Origin: Magallana gigas
Lineage: Eukaryota
Assembly: GCF_963853765.1 (NCBI RefSeq)
Contig: NC_088853.1
Location: 44,206,001 to 44,270,000 of the forward strand
Reading direction: 5' to 3'
Length of the DNA stretch: 64,000 nt
Positions within the stretch are counted from its first letter, which is position 1. The number at the start of each line of letters is the position of its first letter. This document shows positions 38,073 to 49,325 of the stretch, piece by piece. The notes below the pieces were generated by a model. It searched no databases. It saw nothing but the letters and a program-made list of their open reading frames with translations, and was not told the origin of the DNA. Both the position numbers and the translations under genes were made by a program.

Positions 38073-41000
38073 CTCCTCCGATGTCAAACCTACCGCTGAC
38101 CCAGTCTTTGATGTCATAGAAACTGTCTTCTGAAGTGATGTCATAAACCAGCATGGCTGCATTGGCCTTTCTGTAGTACATGGGTGCCTAAAATGGAAAA
38201 AAAAAAAAAAGAAGAGCTTATTAATACAGATAAAAAAAAGCTTGTAAAACAGTTACTGAAGAATGAAATTAAATCAAACAACCTTATAAATTTATTAGCG
38301 ATCCATTAATTGTGAGTTAATAACTTAATATGTCTTTCCCATAATTGGATTTCTAAATGGGACTCCTCTCTTTTTTTCTGGCAGAAGGGGGGGGGGGGGG
38401 ATGGTGTTAATATTTTGGCCAAAATTTCTTGAACTGCAAAGGTAAGTAGTACCTACCGGTATGTTCTTTTTACATCATTCCTATTTATAAGCAATTGGCA
38501 ATATGCTGTTAACTTACCATTGACCTGAACCTTTCTTGACCTGCAGTATCCCACACTTGCAGCTTCATTCTGTAGTTATTTAGGGTTCTGAAAATAATAC
38601 ATTTTTAAAGTCAAAGTTTCAAGGATAGGTTAAAGTCAAAAACTTGCCAATAGAAAAAAGTATAGTCACTTACATGTTCCAACACATGAAAGAACTTGTA
38701 ATTACATGTTTGTAACATGTTGGAGCAATTCAAGGTAAATTTTGTTTTATATATTCAGCTGTTCAAAATGTAATCATTTGAGAGCAAATTTTTAAATAGA
38801 TTTATATACATGTTTTCAAAGAGAATTTTTTAAAAAAATGTCAAAAATCTTTTATAGGCTACTTTTTGTTTCAGTAATAAGTCTTCAACAATGTTAAAAC
38901 TCTTATTTATCAAAAAATGTACATCATACAAAACAGCGCAGTATTTTAAATTTCAGAAATATTTCCTTTAATATATGTGAGTATGAAAGAAGAAGGTAAA
39001 GTTTCTTTCAATATTTGCCCTAAAATTCAAATGTTGTTTAAATCTCATGAAAATATACATACAGTAAAACACGGTTATAGCGAACACGCTTATAATGAAT
39101 TGACGCTTACAGCGAAGTGAATTTCATTCCCCAAGTCTCTATTTCATGTTGTAAACCTGACGGTTATAACGAATTACGCCTATAACGAAGTTAAATTGCC
39201 CATCCCTGGGACTTGGTTATTTATAAGCGTGTATTACTGTATATCATCTTGAATGTGTGTGTATAAAATGCCAAGTTATATGGAACAGAACACTTTTTAT
39301 ATTGTTTCAAAATATAATTATGAGTTATGACTTCAATATATTGACATATTTTTAAGATTTAGTCAAAAATGTTGAAAAATGGCACATTTTCTTAACGTTT
39401 TTAAAGAGGAAAATGTGTCTGCAGACATCGCCAACAACAAAATTAACATATTTTATGTGATATCACATGATAAACTTAAATGTGAGTATATTGGAGGTGA
39501 CAGCTGCAGACATATTTTTTTTACTTTAAGAAAAAACAAAACACTGAGGAATTGGTGTCTTCTGCTCACTTTTATGAAAATTGTGGAAAAATTGCACTGT
39601 AACAAGGGTGATTGTGAAAGTCTAATCAGGTATAACTCTTTATAGATTCTTGTTTATGGGTATTTTTGTATTAAAAATGTTACATTCAATTTCTTGTGAG
39701 ATTTTAAATAATCGCTCTAAAACTTTTTAATGAAATTATGACTGAAAGTGAAACGTACGTACTGTACCTAATTCTTCATGCAATGTTGTATATGTACCTT
39801 TCAACTGATCTGTTATGCATTTACCAGTTATTGTAGTTGTGTTAGTGCCAATAAAATATTTGGATTAATTGATATGAAACAAAATAACTTGACTAGAATG
39901 TACTTTTAGAAGCTGCAATACTCACAGTTTGTATGTAAAAAATGAGGCACCAATAGTTGGACTGACTGCCTTACTGAACATTCCACCAACATAGCGAATA
40001 ACAACACTGGTTTTTCCAACCGCTGTAATAACAGAATTAAATTTTAATCTTTTTACATACTGGTAATATACATGCATGAGTAAAAAAAAACCCATAAATC
40101 ATGCATGAGCACAGGAGTCGGCGATTTTATCAATTTGTTGTAAATAAATGAGAAACAGGCAAAAACCCTACCAGTGAGCTTCGCGAGCGTAGCGAGCGAA
40201 GCGACAGGATGGCAACGAGTTTTCCAGATTTTCTCTATTTCGCTATCACACCCAAATTAAACACCACATATCAACTCCATAGGGTTATTTCATCAATCCC
40301 TGGCATTTTTTTCCCAACATTTACTCTTCGTAGTCATTTAAATCCAAGTTATGCAAATCTCGATCTTAAACAGCGGCCATTGACAATTCTGCGTGACGTC
40401 ACATTCACTGCAGAACTAAATACTCGGAACACTGTCAAAGGAAGGGATAAAGATCGAGGTACTCCGAAAGACATCAGAAAGCATGAAGGAAAAGTTTGAT
40501 CTACGGGAAAAAGCTTTCAACAAAGCATTAGAGGGCCACAGTTTGATACTTACGGGTCAGTGTGGAACTGGGAAAACCTACTTATTAAGGTAATGCATAC
40601 AACTGATATACATAAACAACTACCTCTTAACGACACTGTATTTTTAATGTCGAAAATTTCCCGCAAAAAGTCAAGCATAGCCTGGGTCGTATATATACGC
40701 ACAATTTTTGTATATACTATATATATTGACAGGTTTTGTGCCTATATTTACTTTGGTTTGGAAAATGTTATTTTTTAAGACTAAGGTATCAAACAAAAAC
40801 TGTTTGCATCGACAAAAACCTTATAAAGAGACCTGATAATTTATATCAAAACATTAATTGACACAATGTCTACTTCTTTTGCATGCCCAGAAAAATATTT
40901 TCCAGGGGTGTCCGAGGGATATTTTTGTTTGCCGGAGGGGTTCAATGCCTTTTTTTTTTTTTAATAATTTAATAATTTTTACTATGTAAATTTTTTATGA

Positions 41001-47000: not shown

Positions 47001-49325
47001 CATTTGAAACACATGTGAAATTTTTATATCATAAAGTGTGTGACATTATGAGGAAATCCCCAAAATCCCCACAGGATTGGACTGATGCATTCATTACCAT
47101 GAACACATTTCTTCTCAGTGATGTACATATTTCTTCTGTGAAGCAATTGTTTCAGAAAGAGGCACTTTCCAAAGAAGAAAACAAGTTGAGTACTAAGATT
47201 GTTCTATGGCTTATGGATAAAGAGATTGAAAAACAAGCACAAAATCTGGTTCAAAAACATATTGAAAATGCTAACAAGTCTGAAGTTTCTTCAACATTAT
47301 CTGCAGCAGCAGAAGCAAAATTGAGATATCTAGCTGGAGCCTGCATTCAAAAAATTACAAAACGAATTAAAGAGTCAGTTTTAAGAAAAATAGGAAAAAC
47401 TTCAAAGAAAAGTAGAATCCTCAGGAAAATGGAATACAGGAAGCAAGCAATGTTAAAAAGCTTCAGGATAAAAGAAGAAGATGTCGAAGAAGGTCAGCAG
47501 AGCATGCAGGAGATTGAATACAAACAAGGGCCAACCAGGGGCTTGACAATTGTCAGCGAGTCTGTGTTCTCATTTTTTAAAACGCTGCATAACACTGTAC
47601 AGAAGAAGTTGACAACTGACCATTTTCATTTATTTCCTGACTTGCATAATGTGATCCGAAGAAATGTTGATTCTGACATGACTCTGGCAGATGAGTGGAT
47701 TGCATTATTTAGCAATGTGGAGGTTACAGACGAAGAATTAGACAATGAAATTTTTTTAACATTAATTATGGAACTCTATCGAGACATTACAGAGCATTTC
47801 ATCAGGATTTCTTATGTTGATGCTTTAAAGAATTTTAAAAGATCTGTTCCTCGGAAGAAGAAACAAGCATTGAGATCAAAAGTTCAAGCCTTAGGTGAGA
47901 GGGAAGACCCGAAAAAAAAGAAAGTAGATGAGAAAGAAGAAGATTCCTTTTCGTGTAGTATATGCAAATGTAACTGTGAATGGGAGCCAGCTAATATAGG
48001 GGATCAGAGCATTGCATGTGACAAGTGCAACATATGGTTTCACTATAAATGTGTAAATTTAAAAGGGAATGAAGCCTTTCTAAAAAAGACAAATACAACA
48101 TGGTACTGTTCAGGTTGTAGCAGAAAAGGAAAGGGGCGAGGGAAGCGTTCTTCCAAGAAATAGGTACAGCATTGAAAATACAAAATAAAAATGGTTATAT
48201 TTGTTGTTTCTTTACTGGCAATGAATGGTCAAAAATCAACCCATCAGACCTTACTTAATACTAAATCATTTGTTAAGCTATGATTTTATTCAGTGTTCAG
48301 TTTGAAAATTAATTTTCTTATTTTATCACATTGTACACCCATATTTTATTTGTGAAATATGCAACAGGCATGTGCGGATCAAGGAGGGGGGTCAGGGGGA
48401 TACCCCTCCCCCCCCTCCTGCAAAATTCAAATTATATTAAGAATATTAAACAATTACCTAAATATGCATTATCCCCCCCCCCCCAAAAAAAACACCTTGG
48501 AAAATTTTTCTGCACATTTGCACAGGAGTTGACAATTTTATAAATTTGTTGTAAATTAATATATGCTCACTACACTTGCAAAGATCACTGGTAGTTTTTA
48601 TTTGATTTCTCGTTAATAAAATTTATTCACAACAAATTAATAGAATTGTTGACTCCTGTGGTTATGGTATTGTAAACATTTTGTCATGCATTTTCACCAT
48701 TGAAACTTTGTGTCATTGTGCACTTAATAAAATCTACTTACCACACAGCTGCATCAAAGTTGTTGGACATTTCAAATGTCTTCAATCGGCAGTCAAAAAC
48801 GAACGTCAAAATCTGTTTTCAAATTTCCCGCAAACGAAACTATCGGATTATCGCCCTTTATTTTCAAAGTTATGGTATTTAACATATCTTAAGGAGATAG
48901 AGAAGGGAGATGATATTTGGATTTTTTAACATTATAAAATAAATCAAACACAATAATAAATATAATTTTTTTTTATTAGCATTAGTTAAGATTAGATAAA
49001 TGTATATTTTCTGCAGTGAATGTGACGTCACGCAGAATTGTCAATGGCCGCTGTTTAAGATCGAGATTTGCATAACTTGGATTTAAATGACTACGAAGAG
49101 TAAATGTTGGGAAAAAAATGCCAGGGATTGATGAAATAACCCTATGGAGTTGATATGTGGTGTTTAATTTGGGTGTGATAGCGAAATAGAGAAAATCTGG
49201 AAAACTCGTTGCCATCCTGTCGCTTCGCTCGCTACGCTCGCGAAGCTCACTGGTAGGGTTTTTGCCTGTTTCTCATTTATTTACAACAAATTGATAAAAT
49301 CGCCGACTCCTGTGGCATGAGAAAC

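Follow-up and report, generated by a model that had tools for sequence, protein, structure and literature searches.

We analysed a 64,000-nt stretch of the genome of the oyster Magallana gigas (RefSeq assembly GCF_963853765.1, contig NC_088853.1, positions 44,206,001 to 44,270,000), hereafter the window. The window is AT-rich, with a GC content of about 33%, and its positions 34859-58163 match chromosome OY970745.1 of M. gigas assembly GCA_963853765.1 with 100% identity. Positions 40110-49314 are occupied by an intact 9205-bp DNA transposon of the P superfamily. Its two 306-nt terminal inverted repeats (TIRs) are flanked directly by a 7-bp target-site duplication (TSD); TSDs of the P superfamily are 7-8 bp long. 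Between the TIRs lie two genes on opposite strands: a five-exon gene on the plus strand with an open frame of 885 amino acids, encoding a helicase, and a three-exon gene on the minus strand with an open frame of 845 amino acids, encoding a transposase. The body of each gene is situated in the predicted first intron of the other (Table 1).

Coordinates, phases and GT-AG sites for both genes had been given in an earlier reading of this DNA (the original prediction), and a six-frame reading combined with a search for GT/AG pairs reproduced all that it gave. Helicase exon 1 begins 68 bp inward from the left TIR, and no GT-AG pair other than 40589/44801 produces the RefSeq-like join GKTYLLRRIVNEL (GKTYLL-R-RIVNEL); all junctions of this gene have the form AG/GTA...YAG/G. 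On the opposite strand, transposase exon 1, a mini-exon of 29 nt, starts 239 bp inside the right TIR, and its join to exon 2 gives a Trp followed by LALNFE. Both joins are phase 2 and restore conserved motifs, GKTYLL-R-RIV in the helicase and W-LALNFE in the transposase. The reciprocal nesting that had been claimed also holds in our gene models and in the conservation described below, with each intron 1 containing all other coding exons of the opposite-strand gene.

The current annotation covers only parts of these models. Helicase residues 56-885 are identical to RefSeq XP_065923960.1 ('PIF6-like', 44859-48163), a model whose start, an internal Met in exon 2, leaves out the P-loop exon with its Walker A motif. 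For the transposase, RefSeq has no annotated gene at 41126-43845.

The host gene of the element encodes a Rab-like small GTPase on the minus strand, and the insertion lies in its intron 1, with 172 bp between the first coding exon and the element downstream. This host gene (35934-49530, minus) has its exon 1 (MKSIEAKVVVLGSQG) at about 49486-49530 and further exons with DTAGQE near 38550 and NKxD near 36791; the transposon lies in it in transposase-sense orientation and adjoins a long (GA)n tract. Perfect TIRs, an intact TSD and two open frames point to recent transposition of an apparently autonomous element. A 96-codon ATG-initiated open reading frame (ORF) in the TIR (40209-40499, mirrored in the right TIR) had no Pfam match and was treated as spurious; as read from the alignment, an early stop appears to interrupt this frame in Saccostrea cucullata.

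In a second M. gigas copy (L010, on OY970753.1), element positions 1-5656 are present with 99.75% identity and are followed directly by the last 71 nt of the element. The deleted segment, equivalent to 45766-49243 of the window, takes out the helicase body and the transposase mini-exon together. This is a coupling of the sort that the original prediction had expected from a layout that locks the two genes together, and it illustrates a consequence of the interleaving and not selection for it. The RefSeq model at this deleted copy, XP_065927627.1, starts at an internal Met. Both repeats found in the central spacer of the window are also present in L010 and were thus inserted before the last round of transposition. 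One of them is a palindromic miniature inverted-repeat transposable element (MITE, Table 1) with a weaker match at 32298-32362, and the other, at 44620-44741, matches 61391-61512. At a distance of 82 bp downstream from the transposase mini-exon there is a further MITE-like element, with ends resembling those of its host element. Where it differs from the TIR, this is often at a CpG that has changed from CG to TG or CA. The equivalent place in S. cucullata (L001 18454-18571) holds an unrelated 118-bp palindrome with CACAGG ends.

Table 1 Features of the transposon in the window and corresponding loci in other bivalves. Positions refer to the window or, in the last four rows, to the named locus, where the transposase bodies are antisense; a slash marks a splice site.
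Feature	Position	Strand	Description
Target-site duplication, left copy	40103-40109		GCATGAG; the heptamer directly flanks both TIR ends
Left TIR	40110-40415	+	306 nt, starts CACAGGAGTC; 100% complementary to 49009-49314
Subterminal TIR block	40170-40229		93-100% conserved with S. cucullata; candidate transposase-binding site
Inner TIR block	40380-40409	+	Contains TGACGTCA; 100% conserved with S. cucullata; candidate promoter element, mirror at about 49015-49044
Helicase exon 1	40483-40589	+	107 nt, 35 codons + 2 nt, phase 2; Walker A GQCGTGKTYLL; donor AAG/GTAATG
Helicase intron 1	40590-44800	+	4211 nt; contains transposase exons 2-3 antisense
Transposase poly(A) signal, predicted	41101-41106	-	20 nt after stop
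Transposase exon 3	42200-41126	-	C-terminal catalytic part and stop codon; Pfam TNP-like_RNaseH_N profile 85-133
Transposase intron 2	42201-42411	-	211 nt; precisely missing from contigs L008 and L009
Transposase exon 2	43845-42412	-	Rest of RFX-like DNA-binding domain, helix-turn-helix, first half of RNase H-like domain with DEM; acceptor ttttag/G
Transposase intron 1	43846-48741	-	4896 nt; contains helicase exons 2-5 antisense
Central spacer	43846-44800		Between back-to-back exon-2 acceptors; non-coding, enlarged by repeat insertions
Palindromic MITE, unrelated family	44036-44208		88% match to 6504-6676; arms 44035-44101 and 44129-44195
Helicase exon 2	44801-45116	+	Motifs Ia to II, DEISM; Pfam PIF1 48 bits, profile 42-143
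Helicase exon 3	45297-45425	+	Junctions match RefSeq XP_065923960.1 exactly
Helicase exon 4	45635-45863	+	
Helicase exon 5	46287-48163	+	2B domain, C-terminal helicase motifs, long linker, PHD finger, stop; Pfam Pif1_2B_dom, PHD
Helicase poly(A) signal, predicted	48184-48189	+	21 nt after stop
MITE-like element	48521-48660		140 bp; ends resemble host element termini (CACAGGAGT...); no TSD
Transposase exon 1 (mini-exon)	48770-48742	-	29 nt, phase 2; MSNNFDAAV + TG of Trp; donor TG/GTAAGT
GCGGGAAA motif	48824-48831	-	61 nt upstream of transposase ATG, outside TIR; candidate proximal promoter element
Right TIR	49009-49314	-	306 nt, perfect complement of left TIR
Target-site duplication, right copy	49315-49321		GCATGAG, 7 bp
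S. cucullata (L001), 72-77% nucleotide identity	L001		TIR, then Walker A exon 10028-10126; transposase body 10485-13207; helicase body 13540-16826; mini-exon 18699-18671
S. cucullata, second family (L002), helicase 44% identical	L002		Walker A exon 5964-6049; transposase body 6832-9889; helicase from 9985; mini-exon 14660
Tegillarca granosa, ark clam (L003)	L003		TIRs of about 350 bp; Walker A exon 4951-5036; transposase body 5162-8660; helicase body 10039-14802; mini-exon 15076
Ostrea edulis (L005)	L005		Transposase exon 2 from 18542; mini-exon 10001-10029; decayed helicase remnants in 8.5-kb intron

Identity of the two encoded proteins

The minus-strand protein can be assigned to the P superfamily from several lines of comparison. 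Exon 2 matches the Pfam model TNP-like_RNaseH_N with 31 bits (cut-off 24.6), and the match continues in exon 3, being split exactly at the exon 2/3 junction; the P-element helix-turn-helix model is matched as well. A profile built from 16 transposases of the family matches the Drosophila P element transposase structures 6P5A/6PE2 in two stretches with E=8e-15, and it also aligns exon 3 to 6P5A. Searches of the PDB with single sequences of transposase parts gave no match, and profiles were required. Three sets of columns are invariant in the family, namely D434/E435 (DEM), D534/G535 (DG..N) and E777 (SDIIEN; SDIxEN). Their counterparts in the window are IIDEMTIQ, MTDGASTN and NSDIVENLF, and the catalytic motifs align with DEMKV and LNQDIVEH of the P element. 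By these comparisons, the protein is a P-superfamily transposase with its D/D/E acidic residues present. The family profile spans residues 283-565 of 6P5A, which should cover the GTP-binding insertion, and the Pfam model for that insertion is unmatched at E<=1.

The N terminus of a P element transposase carries a THAP domain, for which we found no Pfam match at E<=0.01 on exon 2, nor at E<=1 on the full-length homologue P0064. Instead, the family profile (A3) matches the DNA-binding domains (DBDs) of RFX5 and RFX1, and the Pfam model RFX_DNA_binding scores 34.8 bits on family member P0092 against a cut-off of 27. A narrower N-terminal profile (A4) matches RFX1 only at E=0.77. We then modelled residues 1-105 of the O. 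edulis protein P0077, mini-exon residues included, with AlphaFold2 (AF2; pLDDT 81, pTM 0.72). In a Foldseek search the model found RFX5 (8ZJR_M) with E=5e-4 and RFX1 (1DP7_P) with E=8.4e-4, a target-normalised TM of 0.81 and a root-mean-square deviation of 2.0 Å; these two were its sole significant PDB matches, each with a probability of 1.00. Sequence identity to the RFX1 and RFX5 DBDs is only about 16%, although the fold is shared, and here the domain is fused to a P-type transposase, unlike in RFX factors. Exon 2 of the window alone has no Pfam RFX match, though it can be aligned with the RFX-like proteins of the family. From profile A3, the Pfam match of P0092 and the fold search, the N terminus of the homologues, and through them by alignment that of the window protein, appears to be an RFX-type winged-helix DBD that replaces THAP.

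The same model gives a structural meaning to the W-LALNFE join. Helix 2-14 of the O. edulis model crosses the exon 1/2 junction, so the 29-nt exon would encode the first half of helix 1 of the DBD. A scan of the TIRs for X-boxes found one half-site in the window and in L001, which is not significant against a background of 1.3 per kb, and no site in the other lineages.

The plus-strand protein is a Pif1-family helicase (superfamily 1B) that ends in a PHD finger. Positions 19-39 of the Pfam PIF1 profile (GTGKT) are matched by exon 1 and positions 42-143 by exon 2, so that the two exons, 4.2 kb apart in the DNA, abut in the profile; the Pif1_2B_dom score is 26.4 bits. In the S. cucullata orthologue P0002, the PIF1 match is contiguous over profile positions 20-191 and reaches 105 bits. 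No second P-loop exon exists on the plus strand of the element. Helicase homologues were found almost exclusively in bivalves.

Conservation and origin of the interleaved layout

The original prediction had named conservation of the layout in diverged relatives as a check, and this check came out in its favour: the interleaving and both distal exons, that is, the Walker A exon and the mini-exon that lie next to the two termini, are found in the S. cucullata families L001 and L002 and in the T. granosa locus L003, while the O. edulis locus L005 retains the mini-exon on the far side of decayed helicase remnants (Table 1). A strict mini-exon pattern has exactly one match, at the expected place, in the 64-kb window, L001, L002 and L005; the mini-exon of L003 came up only when the pattern was loosened and the search limited to the 1 kb where it was expected. 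In all four relatives the mini-exon is 29 nt long, keeps its ATG and frame and has a GTAAG or GTAAT donor, with the consensus M-[SN]-x-x-[FI]-x-x-[AS]-x-W. Right after the mini-exon donor, DNA conservation between the window and L001 collapses. The Walker A exon is likewise kept in L001, L002 and L003, its LTGQCGTGKTY is invariant, and in most pairs compared synonymous changes equal or exceed non-synonymous ones. Across the large exons of both genes, dN/dS between the window and L001 is 0.06-0.11, which shows purifying selection on both genes.

Some gene models in other species contain the long joins. RefSeq P0002 of S. cucullata (L001) starts with the join of helicase exon 1 to exon 2, and O. 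edulis XP_048736617.2 joins the mini-exon (MSNIFSAALW) to exon 2 over 8.5 kb. In P0151, on a 1.3-kb contig (L006), the join ...AAAW-LVTNYE is contiguous, and a cDNA could not be told from an intronless gene.

These comparisons bear on a composite origin, according to which a transposase-only transposon was inserted by chance in the first intron of a helicase gene or element. Nested insertions are indeed common here, and two MITEs lie within the element itself. However, no internal TIRs or TSD flank the transposase body, the first transposase exon is situated beyond the helicase, five loci of four species share the arrangement, and a relative carries both genes as one convergent unit. We consider a composite origin extremely improbable.

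That relative is represented by the Logan contigs L011 and L012 (7.36 kb), in which both genes are single uninterrupted ORFs in convergent orientation, each starting near one contig end. Their helicase is 31% identical (E=2e-121) and their transposase 38% identical (E=4e-107). The convergent relative is from the runs DRR846126 and SRR29726839, and its organism (run DRR846126; L011, L012 and L013) has two families of intronless Pif1-PHD helicase genes, one of them paired convergently with an intronless P-type transposase. Relatives with simple, non-overlapping genes had been named in the original prediction as an observation that would speak against it; such genes do occur in L011 and L012, but the convergent intronless layout is most simply read as the ancestral state, and not as a refutation. 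The bivalve interleaving would therefore be derived. A simple inversion was rejected on paper as its origin, since it would leave the gene bodies on the wrong strands, and a translocation of one body without inversion would thus be needed. In the lineage of the pteriomorph bivalves, the genes would have gained introns and the bodies would have swapped places without inversion. The termini would have kept the first exons, together with the elements that drive their expression.

Transcription of the element and alternative readings

Taken together, we think it probable that the element is an autonomous P-type transposon with two antisense genes, the body of each lying in the first intron of the other, and that this layout is derived. 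Each gene would start just inside one terminus and be transcribed inward, and its first intron would remove the antisense body of the other gene. Both proteins would then need transcription of nearly the whole element and one long-range splice, which would attach the Walker A exon to the helicase or the 29-nt exon that completes helix 1 to the transposase. The predicted pre-mRNAs overlap over about 7 kb, and with predicted poly(A) signals about 20 nt after each stop the mature mRNAs would not overlap.

The original prediction took the identical TIRs to be twin inward promoters, and candidate promoter elements are found both inside and outside them. Between M. gigas and S. cucullata, TIR identity is 53-73% outside the subterminal and inner blocks of Table 1. 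Tegillarca has a similar GGAATGCAACG motif about 95 nt from the terminus, at the same distance as the subterminal block. From TGACGTCA in the inner block, the helicase ATG is 89 bp downstream and the transposase ATG 260 bp; in three oyster lineages (the window, L001 and L002) the distance to the transposase ATG is 252-261 bp. The complete conservation of this block fits a promoter in the TIR. In addition, both Tegillarca TIRs (L003 4820-4856 and 15316-15352) end in CCGGAAGT, followed about 30 nt later by AAG/GTAAGT, a consensus 5' splice site, which suggests a non-coding leader exon inside each of them. Outside the TIRs, a motif about 60 nt upstream of the transposase ATG reads GCGGGAAA in the window and L001, GCGGGATTT in L002 and GCGGCAAA in L003; we take GCGGGAAA to be E2F-like. 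Since the ATG lies 239 bp beyond the TIR and this motif is conserved outside it, the transposase may have a proximal promoter of its own. Conserved motifs resembling TCGGAAC/CCGGAA also precede the helicase ATG.

RNA-like sequences are limited to two contigs of a related copy, L008 and L009, from two sequencing runs, which are 90-94% identical to the window. In both, intron 2 (211 nt) is missing exactly at the predicted junction, which is most simply explained by an origin from mRNA; the contigs confirm the splice of transposase exons 2 and 3 and end 34-36 nt after the transposase stop, beside the poly(A) signal.

Several observations weigh against the interleaved reading, the first of them in these same contigs. 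In L008 (positions 1-247) and L009 (1-218), exon 2 is preceded by unspliced sequence, and the mini-exon is missing; the 247 nt at the 5' end of L008 have no match in any fetched locus. Intron 1 may have been retained, the assembler may have clipped a short branch leading to exon 1, or transcription may truly begin internally. No transcript across 40589^44801 or 48742^43845 was found. The M. gigas RefSeq models P0212 and P0228 start at internal Mets within exon 2 and omit both distal exons, and, since the gene ranges available by look-up are extents of coding sequence only, RefSeq models that do contain a distal exon should not be taken as supported by RNA. The Mytilus copy L004 keeps the order of the bodies, and neither a Walker A exon nor a convincing mini-exon was found in it. 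Finally, a role of the helicase in transposition is something that we purely infer.

The upstream sequence of L008 and L009 touches on transcription starts within 43850-44800, which the original prediction had regarded as contradicting it, and it leaves some weight to a start in the centre of the element. On such an account the two genes would be simply divergent, with the central spacer as a bidirectional promoter and the terminal 'exons' as unused relics. Besides the unspliced 218-247 nt in the two contigs, which break off within 30 nt of each other, and the RefSeq models that begin inside exon 2, it can point to the related copy represented by L008 and L009, in which an upstream in-frame ATG gives an 851-amino-acid ORF with an alternative 13-residue N terminus in place of the mini-exon. 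In the window, however, there is no ATG between the upstream stop and transposase exon 2, and a helicase that began at exon 2 would have no Walker A, as the plus strand offers no other P-loop exon. The spacer itself is about 330 nt long in L001 and only 95 nt in L002, is unconserved in sequence and takes up MITEs, which leaves little room for a central bidirectional promoter. In contrast, polypyrimidine-AG acceptors are kept at both exon-2 starts, the distal exons retain ATG, frame, length and GTAAG donors across lineages that are 37-50% identical in protein, and the mini-exon residues lie in a confidently predicted helix of the DBD. Divergent genes with a central promoter therefore strike us as rather improbable.

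If the interleaving is real, it may still be functionless. The bodies could have been swapped neutrally, with promoters near each ATG and not in the TIRs, and with no role for double-stranded RNA or for a 'locking' of the genes, both of which the original prediction had suggested along with transcriptional interference. The motifs conserved near each ATG outside the TIR (GCGGGAAA/GCGGCAAA and TCGGAAC/CCGGAA) agree with this, as do the predicted non-overlapping mature mRNAs and an ancestral convergent layout that works without interleaving. On the other hand, at least four deeply diverged lineages have kept the layout, and purifying selection acts on both genes; conservation of the inner TIR block equals that of the putative binding block, and the Tegillarca TIRs end as expected of a leader exon that starts in each of them. 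None of these points proves an adaptive role. We see a neutral swap as a serious possibility, albeit one that we would not favour.

The opposite extreme is a selected design in which each gene is hostage to the other. Promoters in the two TIRs would drive convergent transcription of the entire element, only complete copies could make either protein, with both lost by any internal deletion, and the complementary 7-kb pre-mRNAs would feed a small-RNA self-limitation. The helicase would serve to have the gap repair of the host copy the full 9 kb back into the donor site. In its entirety this seems unlikely to us.

As for the helicase in the interleaved element, double-strand gap repair is the process by which an excised P element is re-formed at its donor site. 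The helicase would most likely aid processive repair synthesis over the 9-kb donor gap left by excision; in addition or alternatively, it might contribute to chromatin targeting via its PHD finger. A preprint describes Drosophila PIF1 as promoting processive DNA synthesis in double-strand gap repair (bioRxiv 10.1101/554550).

Elsewhere in the window, a candidate TIR element at 16084-19850 has 185-nt inverted repeats (16170-16354 and 19579-19763, 98%), is surrounded by more inverted and direct repeats and adjoins a run of N at 19414-19578. A GT-rich tandem array with a 21/24-nt period occupies 11815-12345, in the most GC-rich part of the window. Segments 58452-59191 and 63199-63906 are duplicates with 90-96% identity and a spacing of about 4.7 kb, near an annotated B-box zinc-finger gene.

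Relation to known transposons and meaning

With the Drosophila P element, THAP9 and Galileo, the oyster element shares a homologous transposase (TNP-like_RNaseH_N, helix-turn-helix and DDE triad), TIRs and a 7-bp TSD. Its long TIRs recall Galileo, and expression of the P element depends on splicing, as it would here. It differs from them in having an RFX-like DBD and not THAP, an additional Pif1-PHD helicase gene, and an interleaved layout with a first exon and a putative promoter at each terminus; moreover, the Pfam models for the GTP-binding insertion domain and the C-terminal domain are unmatched at E<=1.

The nearest functional analogue is maize MuDR (Mutator), in which mudrA and mudrB are transcribed convergently from promoters in TIRs of about 215 bp. 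Both are two-gene DNA transposons with long TIRs and genes that begin beside the termini and run inward. The MuDR genes, however, have a plain convergent arrangement in which any overlap is restricted to the 3' ends, whereas the oyster pre-mRNAs would overlap over about 7 kb; MuDR also belongs to another superfamily and has another helper protein, and the oyster TIRs are only putative promoters. A helicase within a mobile unit is known from Helitrons (Rep-Hel, with a Pif1-like helicase), though these use a rolling-circle Rep and not a DDE cut-and-paste transposase. A RecQ helicase is carried by the DNA transposons KolobokH and Kolobok-1_CCri, in the latter on the complementary strand (PMC9587614). 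In contrast to both groups, the oyster helicase is of the Pif1 type, a separate gene with a PHD finger, and interleaved with the transposase. Nested host genes in animals likewise have exons in an intron of an antisense gene, but here the nesting is reciprocal, involves both genes of a 9-kb mobile element, to which it is confined, and has been retained as one unit throughout a transposon lineage. In the literature that we searched, with Repbase outside its reach, neither a Pif1 helicase in a P-type element nor reciprocally interleaved transposon genes have been reported.

The models described here have a practical side. Since the RefSeq models are truncated, with the helicase lacking its Walker A exon and the transposase unannotated, knowledge of the layout would improve the annotation of bivalve genomes and their repeats. 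For the P superfamily, the element widens the range of architectures, with an RFX-type DBD in place of THAP and a Pif1-PHD helicase that points to a link between transposition and double-strand gap repair. Multi-gene transposons are usually laid out simply, and the oyster and ark clam element would be an unusually clear case of obligatory co-expression, achieved through long-range splicing and convergent transcription. Should the selected design of mutual dependence prove true, the family would amount to a P-type transposon that had evolved a quality control of its own, directed at the kind of deletion derivatives by which ordinary P elements are parasitised.

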